DNA of 64,000 nucleotides from Bugula neritina. Lineage: Eukaryota; Animalia; Bryozoa. Positions within the stretch are counted from its first letter, which is position 1. Each line of letters opens with the position of its first letter. Positions 28,695 to 64,000 of the stretch are shown here, piece by piece. The position numbers were made by a program, and so were the translations under genes. The stretch lies in the NCBI GenBank assembly GCA_964035545.1, contig OZ037772.1, positions 7,176,889 to 7,240,888 of the forward strand, written 5' to 3'. The notes below the pieces were generated by a model. The model worked only from the letters and a program-made list of their open reading frames with translations, was not told the DNA's origin and made no database searches.

Positions 28695-31000
28695 ATAGGG
28701 CACACATAGTATACATCAACTCATATGGGGCAGATATAGTATACACAGGCTTATGGGGATCGCATATACATGCAGCATATATGAGCTCATAAGGGGCACA
28801 TATAACATATCTAGGCTCATAGCGGCACATAAATAGTATATGAGCTCAAAGATGGCACATAAAATATATACAAGTTCATAGGGGGCAGATACAAAATATA
28901 TAAGTTCATAGGGGGCAGATATAGAATATATAAGTTCATAGGGGGCAGATATAGAATATATAAGTTCATAGGGGGCAGATATAGAATATATAAGTTCATA
29001 GGGGGCAGATATAGAATATATAAGTTCATAGGGGGCAGATATAGAATATATAAGCTTATAGGGGGCAGGTATAGAATATATAGGCTCATAGGGGGCAGAT
29101 ATAATATATTATATAAGCTCATAGGGGGCAGATATATAATATATATATATAAGTTCATAGGGGGCAGATATATAATATATATATAAGTTCATAGGGGGCA
29201 GATATAATATATATATATATATATATATGTTCATAGGGGGCAGATATAGAATATATATGTTCATAGGGGGCAGATATAGAATATATAGGCTCATAGGGGG
29301 CAGATATAATATATTATATAAGCCCATAGGGGGCAGATATAATATATATATATAAGTTCATAGGGGGCAGATATAATATATATATATATATATAAGTTCA
29401 TAGGGGGCAGATATAATATATATATAGGTTCATAGGGGCAGATATAGAATATATAGGCTCATAGGGGGCAGATATAATATATATATATATATAAGTTCAT
29501 AGGGGGCAGATATACTATATATAGGCTCATAGGGGGCAGATGTACCATATATAAGCTCACAACAACTCAAATATAATTTTTTAACGGAGATGCAGGCCAG
29601 ATTTCTATACAAGTTCTACCTCAAGCCCTGGCACAATTATAGCAACTGAAATTATATTATTATCACTGTAATTAAGTGTTTCCAACAGTGAAAGGGGCAC
29701 ATAAAATATATATAAGTTCATAGGGGGCAGATATGGAATATATAGGCTCATAGGGGGCAGATATAGAATATATAGGCTTATAGGGGGCAGATATGGTATA
29801 TATAGGCTCATAGGGGGCAGATATAGAATATATAGGCTCATAGGGGGCAGATATGGTATATATAGGCTCATAGGGGGCAGATATAATATATTATATAAGC
29901 TCATAGGGGGCAGATATATAATATATATATATATAAGTTCATAGGGGGCAGATATAATATATATATATATATATAAGTTCATAGGGGGCAGATATAATAT
30001 ATATATATATATATATAGGTTTATAGGGGGCAGATATAGAATATATATATATATATATTTGTATAGGTTCATAGGGGGCAGATATGGTATATATAGGCTC
30101 ATAGGGGGCAGACATAGAATATATAGGCTCATAGGGGGCAGATATAAAATATATAGGCTTATAGGTGCAGGTATAGAATATATAGGCTCATAGGGGGCAG
30201 ATATAATATATTATATAAGCTCATAGGGGACAGATTTATAATATATATATATATATAAGTTCATAGGGGGCAGATATATAATATATATATATATGTTCAT
30301 AGGGGGCAAATATAATATATATATATATATAAGTTCATAGGGGGCAGATATAATATATATATATATATATATATGTTCATAGGGGGCAGATATAGAATAT
30401 ATAGGCTCATAGGGGGCAGATATAATACATTATATAAGCTCATAGGGGGCAGATATAATATATATATAAGCTCATAGGGGGCAGATATAATATATATATA
30501 TATAAGTTCATAGGGGGCAGATATAATATATATATATAAGTTCATAGGGGGCAGATATAATATATATATATATAGGTTCATAGGGGGCAGATAGAATATA
30601 TAGGCTCATAGGGGGCAGATATAATATATATAAGTTCATAGGGGGCAGATATACTATATATAGGCTCATAGGGGGCAGATATAGAATATATAAGTTCATT
30701 GGGGGCAGATATGGTATACATAGGCTCATAGGGGGCAGATATAGAATACATAGGCTCATAGGGGGCAGATATAGAATATATAGGCTCATAGGGGGCAGAT
30801 ATAGAATATATAAGCTCATAGGGGGCAGATATAGAATATATAGGCTCATAGGGGGCAGATATAGAATATATAGGCTCATAAGGGGCAGGTATAGAATATA
30901 TAAGCTCATAGAGGGCAGATGTAGAATATATAAGCTCATAGGGGGCATATATAGAATATGTAGGCTCATAGGGGGCAGATATACTATATATAAGCTCACA
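28695..31000. repeat. About 30-bp minisatellite (ATAGAATATATA(A/G)G(C/T)TCATAGGGGGCAGAT)n in two higher-order blocks
   Basis: Dozens of CATAGGGGGCAGAT cores with variable TA spacers. A 140-bp unique segment is duplicated at 29553-29693 and 30993-31135. Confidence 0.95.
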
Positions 31001-50503: not shown

Positions 50504-53500
50504 ATGGAGGGGTCCTGCCTACAGCTCGCACTGGAAGGAGAAAGATTGTGTAAATCTGGCGACTGTATCAATGGTGTTCAGTTTTTTGAGGCTGCAGTCA
50601 AATCTGGTGAGAGATTCTACCAAATTTGAACTTTGAAGAGATTGAATTAGAGTTGACAATAATTCACTAATAACCCAGAAATTGCAAACCAAAAACTTTC
50701 AATTTTTTTAATTCCTAATTCTAACAGATGGGTTCTTTTCTTAACCCTTTAGCTGGATTTGAAAAATTATGCAATATTATGTTTGTCAGCGAAATCCAAC
50801 TAGTCAAACTAGTCAAACTATTCAAACTCAATATTCTCCGAAAGAAAGTTATTGGTCTCAATTTTCAGTTTTGTTAACATTTAAACTTATTAATATGTGA
50901 ATACTGAATCAGGTCTGACTGCCTGCATGTTCATGGTGGTGATATCTCTCAGACTATTATAAATCAGAGTCAAGTCTAGCTTCGGTATCCATGGTTTTGG
51001 TTCCATAGCAGTCATTATTTGTTTGGATTTTCAAGTATCGTTACACAAATTACCTGTATTTTGGCAAAGAGGGTTTTCAAAACTAGGTTGCTCAGTCTTG
51101 AAATATAGAGAGCTTTTTGAAATTAAGTTAACACAGTATCACAAGTTATACTGAAGATATGTCAAAAATATTAACAACATGGAAAGTGAAGCTGAAAATA
51201 CCAAACAGTGAATTTCGAAGTCTTTTCATATTGCCAACACCCAACCTAGCACTGCTACAAGGCCACTATTTACAAGGCCGCCGTACTGCAGGTTCTGTTG
51301 TAATATTTTTAGGAGTTACCCCATTATATCTGCTCATTGTTTTGTATTCACAAATTCCTCCTGTCTTGTCTTTATGTTGTCAAATTGAGTCTCCCAAATT
51401 GATAATGACTGCTCACTCCTATAGACAAGACTGCTGCTTGCAAATGTAATAGACAATATTATCTACAAGGTTCAAGTACATTGCCCTGCATCTAGAAGAT
51501 GGATCTCTTCAAGTTGAAACTATGTACCCAATCATTTAACATTTAGGAGCAGTAATGAAGAATTTGAGATAGCCTAAATTCTTTAGTTTAATTATTAGAT
51601 TTTGGTTTGGGACGCGGGTTAAACTAGCTTCTTATGCTAGATTTCTAATCACAGGATTTTCTCAAAATCTCCATTACTGCACCTACCTCTCATTTAGGGT
51701 ACTAATCGTACTGCCACAAGGTACTTTTTCAGTTGCGTACTTTTTCTGCTCTAGGTACTGACGATTTGAAGGTTCTCTCTGCCATATATAGTCAACTAGG
51801 AAATGCGTATTTCTACCTCCAGCAATATGAGAAAGCGTTTGAGTTTCATAAACATGACCTCACTCTTACTCGGTATGTAGTGCTAGTCTGACTCTGGGTG
51901 TAGTATCAGTCATACTCTGGGTGTACTACGACTCAGTAAGTGGTACTAGTCAGTAGTCATACGTTGTAATGTTTCAGTATGTAGTATCAGTGATATACTG
52001 ATTAATGACTGATGGTTTAGTACAACTAAGTATTTAGTACTACTGTACTAGTCATACTTAGTGATGACTAAGTGTGTAGTATCTCTGATACTTAGTAATA
52101 ACTTTATGATTTAATACAACTAAGTATGTAGTGTGAGTCATATTAGTATTTAGTATCAGTGATACTTAGTAATGACTCAGGGTGTAGTTTGAATTTTACT
52201 GGAAGACAATTCTAAAAATAGGTTCTTTCATGTCAAGTCTTTTATATTTTAGTCCGAAATAGTGTTGTTTATGGTTACTTTTTGGATTTTTATACTTTTT
52301 AAAAATATTTAATTTGAGTAAAAAAATTAATGATTCTCGAAAAGGGCCCATTAGTAAATCCTATCTTAAATAAAAGCCATTTTCAATTTATACTGGGTTA
52401 TAATTTCATGGCCAATTTGAAACTGTTCACCTTTCGCCCCTGTATCTGCTGATTGGTTGGCTGAAATGGTTGCACAATAATCACTTGGTGAGCATCATTT
52501 ACAGCTGTATCATTTTCTATGTTCACACTGAAACATCTACAGCACAGAATGTTGCATCTAAAAGATAAAGTGAATTTTATATAAGATATTGTGAGTGAAA
52601 ATTATATGCACAAGGTTGGTAGCCCAGCCAATAGCAAAGGCGATTTACAGGTTTCTTTTAAACTTTACAGTTAATTTGAATAAATTAACACAAAAGTTGG
52701 GATAAAATTGAATGGTTATGCATTTTCACTGCATTTGCACTTTATTTATAACATTGCAACTATACTGCATATAATATACTGCAGCTACAGTGCAAAGCTT
52801 CTTGGTTAGCAAGATACAATGTAAGCCAACACGTTTTTTCAAGTGCCCACTCTCTCTACATCCACAGTAACTGTTATTGATATTGTCTGGTTTATTTGAA
52901 GTCACAATAATGCAGAAAATATTATTGCAACACTTACTCTGTTTACCTCCGTTACCAGGTGATATAATTGTGTTATATATGTAATATTTGTTGTACTTCA
53001 TCACTCAAAGTAATCTGTATAATTAGCAATTATTGCACATGTTAGAATCAGCATTTCTACTACTTACAACGTATTGATTAGTGTGAAATGTTTTAGAGTT
53101 TAACGTACTCTTATCGGTCTGTATAATTGCATTTACTGCAAAGCAAAGTATACATTTGCTAATGGCCGCTAGGTTGCTTGTTTATTGACAGTAAACCTCA
53201 CTATTGGGACGTGAATCCCATTTGTTTTTACGGAGGAAAGTAATGCAATCCCAGCTGTGTATGTCACAGAAAAGTTTCCTTACTTTATAAGTTTCTAATC
53301 CATAATATAATTTTTTCGTGAACTAATGGAGTCTTCTAATTCCATTAATATTCTTGTAATTATTCCTTGCGTTGCATTAGTCCATACATTAGTTCTCTGT
53401 ACTTTGCTGGAGCAGCACTTCACGGTGTGTTTCATACATCTATAAGTGGTGAGTGTAAGCGTGCTAAACGGTGATAATTTTCACCCTTTGAGTCATGGGC

Positions 53501-54821
53501 TTTCAGTTTTTAACTAAATCAACTACTTTAGTTTGACGCCTGATCAGTTGAACATATATAAATCATTTCAATAGGAGTTTATTCGTTGCAAGTGACAGTA
53601 TTTTTGCACTTGCCGGCTTTAAACTTGTTTAAGAATATTTTACATCTTTTTATTTTTATGTAACTAATATTTTTACAGTTGCAAGGGCTAGATATGGGGT
53701 TTAGAAAGGAAAATCAATTGCTCATTACTTCTGCGGCAAATTAATTTCTGTTGTGTTTTTGTATATAAAAGTATTGTAGAAAGTAGCAATGTGAAACCGT
53801 TACATCATAAGTTATAAGTGTAGTTAAAAGTTGCAAGTGTAAAGATAAGTGAAAATGCTGGGTTTTTATACCAGTCAAAAAGGTTAGCTATTGCGTAGTA
53901 GCCATAATATTGCTGGCATAGCTGAGATGTTACATGAAAATCTATAATGAATTGGGGAAAAGCTTTCCCAGTCTATGTAAAGTCCCAACAATTTCTTTTT
54001 CAAAACCATTGAATCATGTATATGCCTCAGTTTGTATATTAATTTAGATATTTAATTATTCATTTAACTTATTGTTATAGCAATGGCAGGTGACATGTGC
54101 AGTATATTATACTTTTGTGTAAAGTAATAGCTTTTACATTGATTTTTGTTGACATTTAATAATTAAATGAAATTATAGCATTCCATTAAAATGCAGTCTT
54201 ACCTATAATAAATTATTTTCTAAGTTATTTCCTGTTTTGCTAGAAGGTTCCCACACACTTATTTTGTGTGCCGAGACTTTATAACTAGTATTTATATTCT
54301 TTAAATTACCTAAATTAAACTATTTTACAGTTTCAGCATTTTGCTGTCTAATGGCAGTTGAATTTTAGACAACTATATTCATCTTCTCCTGTATATATTA
54401 ACAACTTTCACCCTTAGATGGAATTACTTAACAACACAATGTAAATAAATAAACACAAAATAAAAACACATATTCGCCAGCAAGTAGTTTTCTATATGAA
54501 AGGCAAATGTTTTTTTTTAACAGCTCAGTGAATGTGTAAAAGATTTTTCATTTTCAGACATTTTAATATCTTATTCTCCTGCATATTGCTGCGTATTGTT
54601 ATTTTGTATTTCTCCTAGCAACTCTCAATAGTAGATAAAACTACTTATTTTATGAAAAACATAAATCAAAAAGAATAATTTTATGTTAGAGCTTCAGTGT
54701 CTCACCTTAGTTAAGTGTACATGATTGGTGAATTTTTATTTTATAATGTATATGCCTACCATGTAATATATATACCTACAGTGTAATATATATACCTACA
54801 GTTTAATATCTATACTTACAG

Positions 54822-54901
<80 letters not shown>

Positions 54902-57900
54902 TTACAATGTATTGTATGTAGGCCTACTTAGTACTTACAGTGTAATATATATAATACTTACAGTGTAACACATTATGTCCCTTCTGTTGACAGTACAATG
55001 GGAGATGTGCAGGGAGAAGCCAAAGCTTCTGGTAACCTTGGTAACACTCTGAAGGTGCTGGGCAGCTATGATGAGGCTATTGTATGCTGCCAAAGACACC
55101 TCACTCTGGCAGAGGGCATGGGAGATAAGGTCAGCTTTCTCACTGCTGGCAAGGCAGCTCTATTGTAGAGTTGTGAATTTCACTTTTGGTGTATTGATGC
55201 GACAGAGTAACTAGTGACAGTTATACTCACAGTAACTAGTGACAGTTATACTCACAGTAACTAGTGACAGTTATACTCACAGTAACTAGTGACAGTTATA
55301 CTCACAGTAACTAGTGACAGTTATATTCACAGTAACTAGTGACAGTTACACTCACGGTAACTAGTGACAGTTATACTCACAGTGACTAGTGACAGTTATA
55401 CTCACAGCTACTAGTGAAATGACACTCAATAGTATCCATGATTACCGGTGAAAGTAATAGTATTTAACTTAACACTTGCTTTAAGTGCCGAATAGCAACA
55501 CAAACCAAAAACTGGAGTTTACTTACAAAGCTGATGGCCGCCATCTTGTTTTACTTGTTCTAAAAATACTAAATTTTTTAGAGTTCCCATATTCTTCATT
55601 GATGCAGTTTTTACCCTTGTTAGAAATGTGTGAAGCCTTGCACTTTTAGTATAATCTCTCTTCTACTAGCCATGGTGATAGTCACAGTACAGTGACAATC
55701 TATTGCTATTCTAATCCATGACAGATAATCCTATGAAATATGTATGTCAAACTACTGAATGTGGCCGAGGTTTCTGCACTTACATGTTAAACTGCGGTCC
55801 AACTTTTTGTAGGTTAGCATAGCCAGAGCCCGCTACAATCTTGGCAATGTATATCACACTAAGGCTAAGCACATGGGAAACTTAGGTTAGTAATTTTAGC
55901 TGAATCTGTTCATTTTAACATTCGGTGATTTTTTTTCAAATATTAGTTTTTTATTTTATCCATCCTACTTCTGAAAGTTAAACTGTAAGTCCTTATAATT
56001 TAAAGTTAAAAAACTCTAGAATCACTGATTCTTATCCAAACTTTTAAAATGTCCTAAAGAGAGATCTCAAGGATTTTTATACTTATGTTCACATGTCCTT
56101 CCGTATTTCCTGTTAGGATCACATGTCCTTCTGTATTTCCTGTCAGGATCACATGACCTTCTGTATTTCCTGTTAGGATCACATGACCTTCTGTATTTCC
56201 TGTTAGGATCACATGACCTTCTGTATTTCCTGTTAGGATCACATGATCTTCTGTATTTCCTGTTAGGGTCACATGACCTTCTGTATTTCCTGTTAGGATC
56301 ACATGACCTTCTGTGTTTCCTGTTAGGATCACATGACCTTCTGTGTTTCCTGTTAGGATCACATGACCTTCTGTATTTCCTGTTAGGATCACATGATCTT
56401 CTGTATTTCCTGTTAGGATCACATGACCTTCTGTATTTCCTGTTAGGATCACATGACCTTCTGTATTTCCTGTTAAGATCACATGACCTTCTGTATTTCC
56501 TGTTAGGATCACATGACCTTCTGTGTTTCCTGTTAGGATCACATGACCTTCTGTATTTCCTGTTAGGATCACATGACCTTCTGTGTTTCCTGTTAGGATC
56601 ACATGACCTTCTGTGTTTCCTGTTAGGATCACATGACCTTCTGTATTTCCTGTTAGGATCACATGACCTTCTGTATTTCCTGTTAGGATCACATGACCCG
56701 GGAGAGTTCCCCGAGCAAGTAAGAGAGGCATTGATGAAGGCCGTGGAACACTACATAATCAACCTTGACATAGTAAGGGAGCTGGGAGACCGACCAGCCG
56801 AGGGAAGGGCCGCAGGTAACCTCGGAAACACTTTCTACCTGCTAGGAAACTTTGCTGAGGCTATAAACTACCACCAGCAGGTAACTGGAGTTGTCCTCCC
56901 ATTTATCTGGTAGTCAATAATATGATCTCATTGGAAATCTAATTAACAACTTAGTTGATAGGATATATGATTGGATTGCTAAGTTTATGTTATATGGTAA
57001 TGGTATTATTGAGCTATACGTTTGAATTGGGGTTAGTAACTTATCAAGTGTGTCTGTCTGTTTGTAAATGTAATGAAAATGGAAAGGTTTAGGCACAAGT
57101 TGATGCACTGCATTTCTTTGCTATTTTTCAAATTTGTTGTTTCTGTATCAAAGTATTTTTTCTAAATATTTTTCTTGCAAAAAATGCCTTTTTAAAAATG
57201 TATGGTCCCGTTGCAATTGTTATGGAGTTATAATTCCCTTACTTGTGAGGAGAGGAAGATTAGACTTTTTCTCCTTCTTTTCAATTACTTTTGAATATTG
57301 AAATGTTTGTATTTTACTTGCTTGTGGTTGTAATCAGCTTGAAGTGGACAATTCAATGTGCTTCCTTTACTGGCGATACTCTGACTTCTTGTTTACAGAG
57401 ACTGGCTATCGGCAAGGAATACGGAGATAAGCCGGCGGAGAGGCGGGCTTACAGTAACCTAGGCAACGCCCACATCTTCCTCGGGGAGTTTGAGATTGCC
57501 ATCGAGTATTATAAGTAAGTAACTTCGAGTTTGAATCTTGTTATTCACCACTCAGCTCTTGCACGTTGTCAGTAAACTCGCGTAGAAGTGTGTAAATCAA
57601 ATTGTTTATAAAAACTAAAGAAATTCCTCCGTTTACTAGTGAGCTGTGGCATATAATTGTTGTTGAAAAAAATATGAAGAAAATAATCGTTCACTTTCAA
57701 CTCAACATTTCTTGAGGATTAGTTGCGAATAAATTAACTCAAAATAAATTAATTTGAATCTTTTTATTCAGTCAGTAAAAAGTTGAATTTGATTCTTTGT
57801 AGATTTAATCTATTTAAATTTTGGTGTGGAAGAATTATTTATACAAACTTTTGTACAAATAATGTTTACCGGTTTTTTGCTGTGCCTAAGCAAAGAGGCA

Positions 57901-60900
57901 TATAGATTGCCAGCTGGAAGCTTCATTTAGCTACATCTGTTGAGACTGGCCATATCTACTGTGATACAATAGATAGCAAAAATATCTTTAAAGTTACTAA
58001 TTTGAGATTGGTCTATAACACCTCCCTACCCAACCACCATCTCCCTATTAAGAGTTGTGGCTACAAAACTAGCTTATGAATTATCATAAGCCAACATTCA
58101 CGTTTTCTAAACTCAATTTTAGAGTTGTGCTCACTTTGAGTTATGGAAAGGTAACTCGGAATACCTGTATATCTATTAACATGTTGTATGCTCTAGTCCT
58201 AGTTATGAGTGTATCTTGTACCATCTTTTGCTGTGAAATTGACTGCAAGAAATAAATTCAGCCAGAATTAGCCTGTATAACTCGAACCAACAAATTATTG
58301 TTCTACTAACCCTGATGTGGCCGTGCAGAAATTGTTATATAAGCAGCTCCCAGTTGGAGGTGATTGAGTGCAGTAGTTTGCAGTTCTATAATCTTGTGAA
58401 CAGGCGCTACTGCACTCATTCACCCCCAAACTCAGAGCTGCCTATAGAGCAATTCACTCTGGAGTGTTTTTCTTTTACATTCAGAGAAATCATAGCCCTA
58501 GTTCTCTTACAGGAAATCTCTGCAGCTCTCCAAACAGCTAGGAGACTTGGCGCTAGAAGCTCAGGCTTGCTATAGCCTGGGAAACACTTTCACTCTTCTG
58601 AGAGACTATCAGTCTGCCATACAGTATCACCAGAGACACCTGAGTATAGCACAGGAACTACAGGACAAATTGGGACAGGTTAGTTGGGACTCTTCAACCA
58701 CCCATCCGCTGTAACATTCATGATGGCTTCAGAATTTAGGCTAATTGAGGTACTCTGTAACGGGAAATGATAAGGTTTTGCTAAGCAGTTTTATTGCATA
58801 AGAATATCTGAAGTTCCCATTTACTCACTTTATTATGCTGTTAGCCTTATATCTAACATATTAACCTCTAAATTGTAGGGGCGGGCATACTGGAGTCTCA
58901 GCAACGCCCACACTGCTCTGGGAAATCACCAAAGAGCTATGCACTATGCTCAGCTACATCTCGACATATCTCGCGACATCGGAGACGAGGCGGGAAAGGC
59001 GGCAGCGTCGGCTAGCCTTAGAGACCTACAGATTGCGATAGGCATCACCAGCACCCCCAACTCAGGTGAGTAGCCTGTCACTAATACTAACATAGTAGAG
59101 CTGCGCTAGTACTCAATACTCAAGTAGAGCTGTGCCAGTTCAGCTGATGTAGAGCTGTACCAGTTCACGTAATGTAGAGCTGTGCCAGTTCAGGTAATGT
59201 AGAGCTGGGCCAATAATCAACTATTTAGATATGACTGTGTAAACTAGTGTAAGTACTGTAGATGTAGGTGTAAGTACTGTAGATGCAGGTGTAAGTACTG
59301 TAGAGGCAGGTGTAAGTACTGTAGATGCAGGTGTAAGTACTGTAGATGCAGGTGTAAGTACTGTAGATGCAGGTGTAAGTACTGTAGATGCAGGTGTAAG
59401 TACTGTAGATGCAGGTGTAAGTACTGTAGATGTAAGTGTAAGTAAAGATGTACACATACTGTTGCAGATCCACTCAGTAAAAAGAGGAACAGCATGGACA
59501 GATTGGACATCATACAGATGAGTCCCATCTCCTCTGAAAACAGGTGCTACTACATGTTCAATGTGTATAATACTTGTATATAACTGTAATGGGGCCAGTA
59601 GAGCGGGCCTGTATGGTGGCCCGGTAAAGGGGTTCAGTAACAGATCAGTTCATGGTGCAGGAAGAGAACTCAAAGTGCTGTTGGGTTTTCCAAGATATAA
59701 AAAGTGCGTCTGGAAATTCTGTTTTATAAAATTAGAATAAAAAAATCTTCAAAGATATGAAAAGTAATTATGAAGATTAAAATATTTAAATATCTTTTCT
59801 TGTATATATTTAATAACGCCATTATATTATATTTCATCGTATTGTGAGTTTGTTTTGGAGTTTTACTCCCCTTTGTTACTCTCCAGTGTCAATGGAGAAA
59901 GCCGACCAAATAGACTGGGAGGAGACAGTAAGAACACATCCAGGTCGAGCACGCCGTCTACCACCCCTTCCAACACTCCAGTCACACCTCTCAGAGCACT
60001 GCCCAACCACCTGCTCAACACCAGCAGGGTTGTCTCCCCCAACTCCAGCAACGATGAGGAGAATTTCTTTGACATGCTTTACAAGTTCCAGGGGAGACGA
60101 TTAGATGATCAGCGGACCTCAATGCGACTCACCAACGGAGCTGCTTCTCACAAGATAGGTCAGTTGACAGGTGTCAGTTCTTTAACAGGTGCCAGCAGGT
60201 GTGTGTTAGCTGCCAGGTGTCAGCATGTGTCTGTCAGTTGGCAGGTGTCAGTCATTTAGCAGGTGTATATCAGCCGGCAGGTGTCAGCAGATATGTGTCA
60301 GCTGACAAGTGACAACCAGTGTCAGTTGGCAGGTGTCAATCAATAGGCAAGTGTCAACAATCAGGTTTCCGTGTCTAAAGTTAAACAATAACTTGAAATA
60401 TAGTTGATTCAGGTCCTGCTACTCTAACAAGGCAGACCGGAGATAGTTATATCAGGTGTGGAAAGTTTTTTCTTTTACTGCAACAGATATTGTATCACAT
60501 CATTGGACCAGCATTGGCGGCTTTAAAGTTATTTTATGTCTTGTCAAGCAGATAAGGCTTCCATGTGATGCTTCCATCTACACCGTATAATGCATATGTA
60601 ATATATAGTGTGGTGCAACTAGATTTCAAAGTCATCAGGACATTGGTTCATCGTTTCGTTACCAAATTTTTGAATTCAAATATATCCAAATGAGTGATTG
60701 AGATTCATGTTTTCTGCTTTCGCGTTCAGTCGCAGTGCGGTATGACTTCCGTGTATAAGTGTATAGGTTATTGGTAGATTACGGGGAGCCAATATGGCCG
60801 ACTTCACACATCCTGTCGATAGTTTTTCATCTGTTGCTGACTTTGTGTTGCAGAAGACACGAAGAAGGAGCAGCTGATGGACATTGTCGCCGGAGTTCAG

Positions 60901-61424: not shown

Positions 61425-61874
61425 TTGTTCCTTTGAAATATTAATTTCCCCATTTTACTGGTGAAATTCACATACATAGACTAAAGGCTATACAATAATT
61501 ATCCAAATTCTGATTGCCACAGTGTCTTACAAAGTCAGTCCTTTAAAGTCTTTGAGTCAGCTATATCAAGTCGCCAAGTCACTCACTCGAGTGACCAAGT
61601 TACTGTCTCAAGTCACTCAGTTACACCACAGCTGCCTCATTACTCCCCATATTGTTATCCACTAAATGCTGTTTACAAGAATATAAGTGCTTGTTTTAAA
61701 GTGGCACATCAGTTCCTAGCAGTTTTAGATTGGATTGCGGGCGTGTGATCAGCTCCCCTTCCTTAGCCCTCGTTACACAGGCTATGACAAGTGTTTATTA
61801 TCTGATAGCAGGAGAATCAATACGTAATACACTTGTGATTACAACTCAATTATTTACACATGGCTGTCGTATAA

Positions 61875-62855
61875 TATACAATATAACTAGTATATAATAT
61901 ACAGTATATCTATGGTATATGATATACAGTATAACTATGGTATATGATATACAGTATAACTAGTATATACTATACAGTATAACTAGTATGTAATATACAG
62001 TATAACTGGCATATAATATACAGTATAACTGGTATATAATATACAGTATAACTAGTATGTAATATACAGTATAACTAGTATATGATATACTGTATAACTA
62101 GTGTATAATATACGGTATATCTAGTATATAATATACAGTATATCTAGTATATGATATACTGTATAACTAGTGTATAATATACAGTATAACTAGTATATGA
62201 TATACAGTATATCTATGGTATATGATATACAGTATAACTATGGTATATGATATACAGTATAACTAGTATATACTATACAGTATAACTAGTATATACTATA
62301 CAGTATAACTAGTATGTAATATACAGTATAACTGGCATATAATATACAGTATAACTGGTATATAATGTACAATAGTACTAGTATGTAATATACAGTATAA
62401 CTAGTATATGATATACTGTATAACTAGTGTATAATATACGGTATATCTAGTATATAATATACAGTATATCTAGTATATGATATACAGTATAACTAGTATA
62501 TGATATACAGTATAACTAGTATATAATATACAGTATAACTAGTATATAATATACAGTATAACTAGTATGTAATATACAGTATAACTAGTATATAATATAC
62601 AGTATAACTAGTATGTAATATACAGTATAACTAGTATATAATATACAGTATAACTAGTATATAATATACAGTATAACTAGTGTATAATATACAGTATAAC
62701 TAGTATATAATATACAGTATAACTAGTGTATAATATACAGTATAACTATAGTATATGATATACAGTATAACTAGTATATAATATACAGTATAACTAGTAT
62801 GTAATATACAGTATAACTAGTGTATAATATACAGTACAACTAATATATAATACAC
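61875..62855. repeat. 23-bp minisatellite (TATAACTAGTATATAATATACAG) x about 42
   Basis: About 1 kb tandem array in the GPSM2 intron after the GoLoco exon. Confidence 0.96.
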
Positions 62856-64000
62856 ACTGTTCATGTATGAAGTTCTGGTATGAACCATATTATTTGGTAA
62901 TAAACAAAGTTTGTGTGTTAAATTTAGCCACTAGAGTTGAAATACTGAGCCCAAATCAGTATTGAATCACTATACATATTTTTGTTAAGTAAAACAAAGC
63001 TTTATGGAATAGGAAAGACAATTCTATACAACTTTGAAAGGTCATTTATTGATTAGGTAATTCTCCATCAGCTGAAAGCTCATAAAACGTATTTATAATT
63101 GATAAGTAATTCCCTCCTATCACAAAGTCATCATTCAAATCAAACAAACATTCAACTAATACCAGCTCAATAAACTCTGCATCGCTAACCCTGCTTGAGA
63201 ATGCCAAGATGTGCAGCTATTGGGCTCTGTAATCAGTCTGCTTAGCCTCAGAGTGTTACCAGGTGTGAGGGGAGGTAGACAGCCTTTCCCAAAGCTGCCT
63301 CAATGCTAGCCTGAGGGCAGCTACGCTGTTTATTTATCAATAGGCATTCAGCTGCTAGCTATGGGCTAGGTTGTTGAGATGTGGCATTATAGTTGTTAGT
63401 ATACACACAGCCTACACTCTGGGGTATAGAACAACTGTGCACTCTGTAATAGAACAACAGCACGCCTATATCTGCACACAGCTTAGCTTTGGCTATTCCT
63501 TTACCACGTCTGTAAGTTTTACTGCTTTCGTTACAAAATAGTAATCTAAGCGGTGTTTAATTTTTAGGCATAATAAAAATTCCACCTCTCACCTGGTAAA
63601 TTAAATGGAAGAAGTAGTTGGTGTTTAATGGAGAAATCTGAAATTTTCTCGTCTTGAATTTGTTGATGTTGGTTTTTTTAGTCATGGAAGTATTTTTGGT
63701 AATCTTTTAATTTCTTGTAGACATAATGTTTTGTGTTGTTATTTTATTATTCATCGTTTTATTGTATTGGTTTGTTGCACATTTGAAATTTGCCTAAACT
63801 GCTAAAATACTGCTTCTGATACTATTTTATCTCACAGTTTATGGCTTGAATACATTGACAATGCCTGTCATAGCCTAAATTTCATAAACTTCATAGGTTA
63901 TGGGGTTGCTAGTCACTCTGCCCCAAGCTGATCTACAGTTAATGCTGTCTTTCAGTACATTTATAGATATTAAAGCCTTCTTTTGTTAGCCTCAGTATTT

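Follow-up and report, generated by a model that had tools for sequence, protein, structure and literature searches.

Twenty tandem copies of a splice acceptor in the LGN/Pins gene of the bryozoan Bugula neritina: a mirage-type minisatellite, most likely harmless intron DNA

Tandem duplications which straddle an intron/exon boundary and carry the splice signal with them are known from the amphioxus genes Adh3, troponin C, BflGb6/BflGb9 and PGBD5 and are called mirages, a term credited in PMC3087553 and PMC3902484 to Canestro et al. 2002. Those of the globin study, one of which is an acceptor-side array in the gene BflGb6, differ in copy number between alleles, and regular splicing is undisturbed according to reverse transcription-polymerase chain reaction (RT-PCR) (PMC3087553). 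Likewise no disturbance of regular splicing was seen for the mirages of Adh, TnC and PGBD5 (PMC3902484). In addition, a 37-bp variable number tandem repeat (VNTR) in intron 7 of the human F7 gene (IVS7) provides 5–9 identical donor pseudo-sites, which are functional in tests but silent in vivo, the exon-adjacent site alone being used (PMC1557585). Here we describe a 64,000-nt stretch of genomic DNA of the bryozoan Bugula neritina (contig OZ037772.1 of assembly GCA_964035545.1, positions 7,176,889 to 7,240,888; hereafter the window), in which 20 tandem units of 30 nt span the boundary between intron 4 and exon 5 of the LGN/Pins (GPSM2) gene. By anatomy and class this array is, with near certainty, a splice-junction minisatellite of the mirage type. 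Most likely it is harmless intron DNA and not the isoform length dial that an initial annotation of the window had considered. To the neutral reading as a whole, i.e. expansion by slippage or exchange, a lengthened intron, use of the distal AG and an unchanged messenger RNA (mRNA), we assign a probability of about 0.79.

Tandem Repeats Finder (TRF) reports a single tandem array at 56089–56698 with a period of 30, 20.3 copies, 96 % matches and 0 indels. Read directly in the register of the acceptor, the array comprises 20 units (Table 1), each composed of the first 12 nt of exon 5 (GATCACATGACC) and the last 18 nt of intron 4 (TTCTGTATTTCCTGTTAG in the consensus). Per unit there is a pyrimidine tract, a TAG and two UnAy branch-point-like motifs located 20 and 25 nt before the AG. 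Nineteen of the 20 units terminate in AG; unit 13 has AA at 56475–56476, which puts its AG one base further to the right. The greatest divergence is found in unit 1, which starts with GTTCACATGTCC (3 mismatches), and in unit 2 (2 mismatches), and the interior units have 0–1 mismatch. Nine decoys are identical to the exon-adjacent acceptor over the 23-mer from −20 to +3, all 12 bases from +1 to +12 are matched in 15 of the 19 upstream junctions, and 19 junction copies have at most one mismatch in 24 nt. The exon frame is open from 56029, just after a TGA stop at 56026, and its translation consists of GSHDLLYFLL repeats; of the array's six frames, three in all lack stops. Within the 216-Mb assembly the 30-mer repeat is restricted to the LGN/Pins locus. 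The initial annotation had described the unit as the 3′ splice site plus the beginning of exon 5, counted 20 units of 30 nt with 19 AGs in phase, noticed the one unit shifted by 1 nt and read the frame as open from about 56029, and in all of this it was accurate. The one correction to this description concerns exon 5, whose end is at 56880.

Table 1 Coordinates of the LGN/Pins exons, of the array at the acceptor of exon 5 and of the junction-anchored arrays found elsewhere in the genome. Positions without prefix refer to the window; L015 corresponds to G000:C8:7420001–7430000 and L016 to G000:C8:7440001–7450000
Feature	Position	Strand	Basis
Exon 1	50504–50606	+	tblastn and splice signals
Exon 2	51755–51872	+	tblastn and splice signals
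Exon 3	54994–55129	+	tblastn and splice signals
Exon 4, 73 nt, phase 1 at its end, coding for …YNLGNVYHTKAKHMGNL-G	55813–55885	+	tblastn and splice signals
Non-repeated 5′ part of intron 4, AT-rich, donor GTTAGT at 55886	55886–56086	+	direct sequence reading
Mirage-type minisatellite, 20 units of 30 nt	56087–56686	+	repeat finder, unit alignment, genome-wide uniqueness, DNA unitig depth
First in-phase decoy AG; 18 further ones at 30-nt steps to 56655–56656, unit 13 excepted	56115–56116	+	
Unit 13, sole unit with terminal AG mutated to AA	56447–56476	+	
Probable authentic acceptor AG, exon-adjacent and last in the series	56685–56686	+	homology: GPSM2 alignment, gapless junction, loop length
First 12 nt of exon 5 (GATCACATGACC), exonic part present in every unit	56687–56698	+	
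Exon 5, 194 nt, TPR; donor GT at 56881–56882	56687–56880	+	GPSM2 alignment, tblastn, splice signals
Exon 6	57399–57514	+	tblastn and splice signals
Exon 7	58513–58678	+	tblastn and splice signals
Exon 8, donor at 59066	58879–59065	+	tblastn and splice signals
Donor-anchored array, 35 nt × 3.8, unit …GTAGAAG/GTGGGT… (AAG,GTGGGT junction)	L015 1784–1915	exon on −	
Donor-anchored array, 31 nt × 3.6, unit …CTG,GTGAGT…	L015 3479–3591	exon on −	
Donor-anchored array, 22 nt, degenerate, unit G,GTAATATA	L016 9241–9393	exon on −	

The host gene is the orthologue of LGN/Pins (GPSM2), with an N-terminal TPR array and C-terminal GoLoco motifs. Its exons were located by tblastn with five LGN/Pins relatives and then refined to the splice signals. 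The best structure matches of the TPR region are GPSM2 and Drosophila Pins (E values from 4e-55 to 7e-52), and the translation of exon 5 from the last AG can be aligned over its full length with residues 148–212 of human GPSM2. With the distal AG, exons 1–8 give one continuous TPR reading frame of 364 amino acids (aa). Two matches to GoLoco (PF02188) above the Pfam cut-off were found on two downstream exons. Thus the structure matches, the tblastn hits and the model of exons 1–8 bear out the gene identity and the exon 4/exon 5 junction proposed in the initial annotation. LGN/Pins is present as a single copy in the genome, and a search of the genome for a retrocopy or paralogue preserving the spliced junction found none.

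Independent support for the array comes from one public run (X1, Logan unitigs), compared here over 55500–57300 (1,801 nt); a search for RNA runs over 54900–59100 yielded X1 only, which is not recorded as RNA. The run is evidently derived from DNA, with equal depth in introns and exons and no splice joints. Its unitigs break at the edges of the array, at the limits of 31-mer uniqueness (for example, 56669 is the first position of one unitig), and the depth within the array is about 440–490 in comparison to about 43–75 in the flanks, so that the array 31-mers reach about 6–11 times the flank depth. In the reference, the commonest of these 31-mers have 8–10 occurrences. The bin into which the AA variant, unique to unit 13, falls has a depth at the haploid level, and the depth of the array is somewhat under twice the reference copy number. 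Because of the breaks at the edges, the raised depth and the 31-mer copy numbers, the multi-copy array is not an invention of the assembly; roughly the assembled size is supported, the exact length being beyond what these short unitigs can size. Comparison of 55618–57095 with X1 also reveals a second haplotype with an intron divergence of about 4 % (281 nt contain 12 substitutions and one 5-nt insertion), i.e. the animal is very heterozygous. In this haplotype exon 4 is unchanged and all four differences in exon 5 are synonymous third-position changes, which confirms the reading frame of exon 5.

Splicing most probably takes place at the last AG of the series. If this AG is taken, the exon 4/exon 5 junction, expected to read …GGAAACTTAG joined to GATCACATGACCCGGG, aligns without gaps with the five relatives. 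Across 17 aligned LGN/AGS3/Pins proteins (of insects, crustaceans, mites, a flatworm and vertebrates), the loop from NVYH to DPGEF changes in length only by −3 to +4 residues, in no case by 10 or more, and 12 of the 17 relatives have precisely the loop length that results from the last AG. Accordingly, the GPSM2 alignment, the relatives and the loop length uphold the earlier statement that only this AG yields an LGN-like junction. An insert of 10–190 hydrophobic residues in the loop would be without precedent in the LGN family. On the whole we regard near-exclusive use of the distal AG as probable.

The decoys look competent because they have branch-point-like motifs and a pyrimidine tract of their own and share the sequence of the real site. 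Their silence, if real, would be contextual: the authentic site and the nine identical decoys can be distinguished only by the sequence after +12. Downstream of the authentic AG, 65 % of the bases from +13 to +72 are purines, the 194-nt exon 5 contains 14 GAR triplets, and a donor follows at +195. The decoys are followed by the pyrimidine-rich repeat with 37 % purine, and the array possesses 0 GAR triplets and 21 UCUU-type motifs (UCUU/CUCU/UUCU) per 600 nt. Both exon definition and enhancer-dependent recruitment of U2AF would exploit such a difference. Structure prediction gave no support for masking of the decoys by RNA structure (z −2.2, with an almost unpaired centroid).

Further observations concern the question whether the repeat is translated. 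A search with the 264-aa open reading frame of array and exon 5 gave no match to a decapeptide-repeat protein among 5.8 billion proteins; this search sees proteins of 145–462 aa, so that a full-length protein with the insert would be missed. Most of the unit variants are non-synonymous when read in the frame of the exon (Y/C, D/V, L/P, L/S and G/R versus two silent ones), and they show, with these small numbers, no visible coding constraint. Protein searches for a close relative in which to compare the orthologous intron brought none: hits to proteins with many TPRs dominated the representative search, a query with an ant Pins gave insects only, and identities reached at most 65 % in a region-restricted search. 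Judged by the database, the loop of the relatives and the unit variants, the array does not appear to be a translated coding repeat.

In comparison to the described systems, the array resembles the amphioxus mirages in several traits. Its units are of minisatellite size, arranged head to tail, and span the boundary including the splice signal; the terminal copy next to the exon is the authentic junction, an assignment made here by homology only; and three further arrays at unrelated genes were found in 200 kb sampled elsewhere in the same genome. Like the amphioxus arrays it lies on the intron side, is private to its locus and has more diverged edge units. As in BflGb6, the repeated segment consists of an intron's 3′ end plus an exon's 5′ part, and the unit sizes quoted for the Adh3 mirage (10–72 bp) include 30 nt. 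On the other hand, there are 20 copies instead of the 3–6 in the amphioxus globins, nine of the decoy acceptors are identical to the real one, and the unit is in frame and free of stops. Moreover, normal splicing and length instability have been demonstrated for amphioxus mirages, whereas the LGN array is known here from DNA alone.

The human F7 VNTR shares with the LGN array a terminal unit that spans the exon-intron junction and thereby creates pseudo-sites of identical sequence, but it is donor-side, and the mode of scanning proposed for it, from 5′ to 3′ with the first site winning, would not by itself pick the last acceptor of the LGN array. Therefore exon definition or enhancers must be invoked. 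Straddling repeats can relocate splice sites or leave duplicates of them in the intron also in the cases of boundary repeats in human segmental-duplication genes and of intron gain by tandem duplication which are described in PMC2812944 and PMC4974935, respectively. The segmental-duplication cases were noticed through transcript differences between paralogues, whereas the LGN gene is single-copy and conserved and keeps the ancestral junction. A last comparison concerns NAGNAG acceptors, in which several in-frame AGs likewise compete at the end of an intron, with products that escape nonsense-mediated decay (NMD) and are distinguished by whole codons. The two AGs of a NAGNAG acceptor are 3 nt apart, share one branch point and pyrimidine tract, and are both commonly used. 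In the LGN array the spacing of the AGs is 30 nt, with a separate tract and branch-point-like motif for every AG, which places the array outside the NAGNAG class.

How the array may have arisen can be outlined as follows. A 30-nt segment across the acceptor of intron 4 and exon 5 would have been duplicated in tandem and then, through replication slippage or unequal exchange, multiplied to 20 copies; the genome is one very prone to minisatellites. The likeness of intron TTCACATGTCC to exon ATCACATGACC, 30 nt apart, possibly seeded the first duplication; equally, unit 1 may be an old decayed copy. Because every added copy would lie upstream of the exon-adjacent one, the additions would all be intronic and would leave the main mRNA unchanged, with intron 4 growing from about 230 to 801 nt (3.5-fold). 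Edge units would escape homogenisation and diverge. The last AG would be chosen by exon definition, since only this copy precedes the real exon body, which is purine-rich and enhancer-like from +13 and has its 5′ splice site 194 nt downstream.

The frequency of minisatellites in this genome was assessed in 264 kb, consisting of the window and twenty 10-kb samples taken elsewhere (L007–L026), with a period of at least 10 and at least 3 copies required. There were 40 minisatellites, i.e. one per 6.6 kb, which occupy 4 % of the DNA. The period is divisible by three in 13 of them, the third that is expected under neutrality, and among these 13 arrays 39 of the 78 frames are open. For random 30-mers from LGN/Pins introns a given frame is open 49.5 % of the time. 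Since one-third of the periods are divisible by three and about half of the frames are open, an in-frame, stop-free array is nothing special: about 1 in 6 junction-anchored arrays should have this property by chance. The initial annotation had treated it as noteworthy, a view that this chance level and the three open frames of the array do not sustain. As a separate observation, ACAGT/ACTGT occurs in 13 of the 40 consensus units (1.9 expected) and CTGTA/TACAG in 12 (2.0 expected). The units bearing these pentamers are otherwise unrelated and locus-private, and the LGN unit itself contains CTGTA. The recurrent pentamers could be a shared instability core or the footprint of an acceptor (yACAG) origin of many arrays.

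Several points weigh against the neutral reading. The only public run found for the locus is DNA. Nine decoys are indistinguishable from the real site between −20 and +12, each with its own branch-point-like motif and pyrimidine tract, and mRNAs spliced to an upstream AG would keep the frame without a stop and thus would not be eliminated by NMD. Early experiments with duplicated sites conflicted on the question which acceptor copy wins (discussed in PMC1557585), and human tandem repeats at exon-intron boundaries sometimes create alternative splicing (PMC2812944). Finally, the precedents in the literature concern other species and, for the most part, longer units. Next in probability, though still unlikely, is the alternative that the distal AG is dominant and the nearest one to three decoys, 30–90 nt upstream and within reach of an enhancer, are used at a low level. 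The outcome would be in-frame LGN isoforms with +10, +20 or +30 residues, which escape NMD as functionless splicing noise. The identity of the decoys, their branch-point-like motifs, the open frame and the alternative transcripts that human boundary repeats can yield (PMC2812944) are all compatible with such leakage; the reported silence of the amphioxus mirages and F7 pseudo-sites, the tightly conserved loop length and the lack of a decapeptide-repeat protein of 145–462 aa in the 5.8-billion collection argue against it. Appreciable use of the decoys, which would give an NMD-immune, in-frame ladder of isoforms with 1–19 extra hydrophobic decapeptides in the loop between TPR3 and TPR4 that depends on a hypervariable array length, is very doubtful.

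Still less credit is due to a kinetic or regulatory role of the intron, in which 20 pyrimidine tracts and AGs would sequester U2AF or PTB-type proteins and slow or regulate the removal of intron 4 or promote its retention while the protein stays the same. The 21 UCUU/CUCU/UUCU motifs in 600 nt and the 3.5-fold lengthening of the intron would suit this idea, but it has nothing locus-specific in its favour, such arrays being frequent and locus-private in the genome, and no stable RNA structure is predicted (z −2.2). Even more improbable is a functional length dial, i.e. a substantial use of upstream AGs by which the length of the array sets the number of hydrophobic decapeptides in the TPR3–TPR4 loop and heritably tunes spindle orientation. 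What speaks for it is permissive only: a 30-nt unit that is in frame and stop-free, with 19 AGs in phase. This property is expected by chance in about one array out of six and three of six frames are open; furthermore, the unit variants are mostly non-synonymous, the family loop varies only by −3 to +4 residues, there is no back-up copy of the single-copy gene, and like arrays with units of 22, 31 and 35 nt exist at unrelated genes. Least probable of all is an assembly artefact, with an array wrongly collapsed or expanded or absent from the animal. Short-read unitigs cannot span the array and do not fix its exact copy number, but they break exactly at the limit of 31-mer uniqueness, the array depth is about 6–11 times that of the flanks against 8–10 copies in the reference, and for the AA variant unique to unit 13 the depth is at the haploid level. 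Between the two outcomes offered in the initial annotation, orthologue collinearity, sequence context and precedent thus favour use of the distal AG among near-identical decoys, and the ladder of isoforms finds no support. The accompanying remark that either outcome would be unusual does not hold, as junction-spanning minisatellites recur in this genome and are known from amphioxus and human F7.

The array constitutes a natural experiment on the choice of 3′ splice sites, with 19 decoys which are all in frame and whose errors are not hidden by NMD. If only the last AG is used, the sequence of the site is insufficient to explain the choice, and exon context must do so. Should the decoys be used appreciably after all, the array would modify a core spindle-orientation protein in a heritable and fast-mutating manner. 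As an acceptor-side mirage it is particularly clean (20 copies, nine matching decoys, in frame, in a single-copy conserved polarity gene) and by itself does not introduce a new principle. To a phenomenon known from a few amphioxus genes and human F7 it contributes an acceptor-side case that is well characterised, and it would be a good substrate for minigenes.

The three further junction-anchored arrays (Table 1) have unit lengths that are not multiples of three. They adjoin minus-strand exons encoding cysteine-rich CPxGxYC repeats with a weak match to Ephrin_rec_like, two or three of the arrays being located within one gene. An additional candidate, a 24-nt array with a TAG-ending unit in sample L008, was rejected as it is not anchored at a junction. 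Within LGN/Pins, a search of the other junctions revealed no copies at up to 6 mismatches in 24 nt; only the acceptor of exon 5 has them.

Some other repeats of the gene lie close to splice sites. The first GoLoco exon has its donor at about 60158 (..AAGATAG,GTCAGT), and at 60159–60400, directly beyond it, there are at least 10 irregular CAGGTGTCAG-like motifs 14–28 nt apart, which resemble the donor itself and of which TRF reports 60186–60251 (28 nt × 2.4). This series may be an old, degenerate donor-side mirage. The exon 8 donor (59066) lies about 180 nt upstream of a 21 nt × 9.4 array (GTGTAAGTACTGTAGATGCAG) at 59247–59444; each unit of this array contains CAG,GTGTAAGT or GTAAGT donor-like motifs, and no junction anchor is identifiable. 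The last 250 nt of intron 2 are occupied by 20-nt units (TAATATATATACCTACAGTG) and a (TA)n run (54744–54990). The ..TTACAG,TGTAAT of these units resembles the exon 3 acceptor ..TGACAG,TACAAT (54993/54994), with no copy within 6 mismatches of the 24-nt junction.

Two larger AT-rich minisatellites are present in the window. The first, at 28777–30998, extends over 2.2 kb (30 nt × about 69, 75 % matches) and shows higher-order periods of 60 and 90 nt; the second (61870–62856, 23 nt × 42.5, about 1 kb) is located in the 3′ part of the LGN gene or just after it. About 40 kb downstream of the window, an exon for an EGF-like, calcium-binding module is found at L008 800–900 (G000:C8:7280800–7280900).

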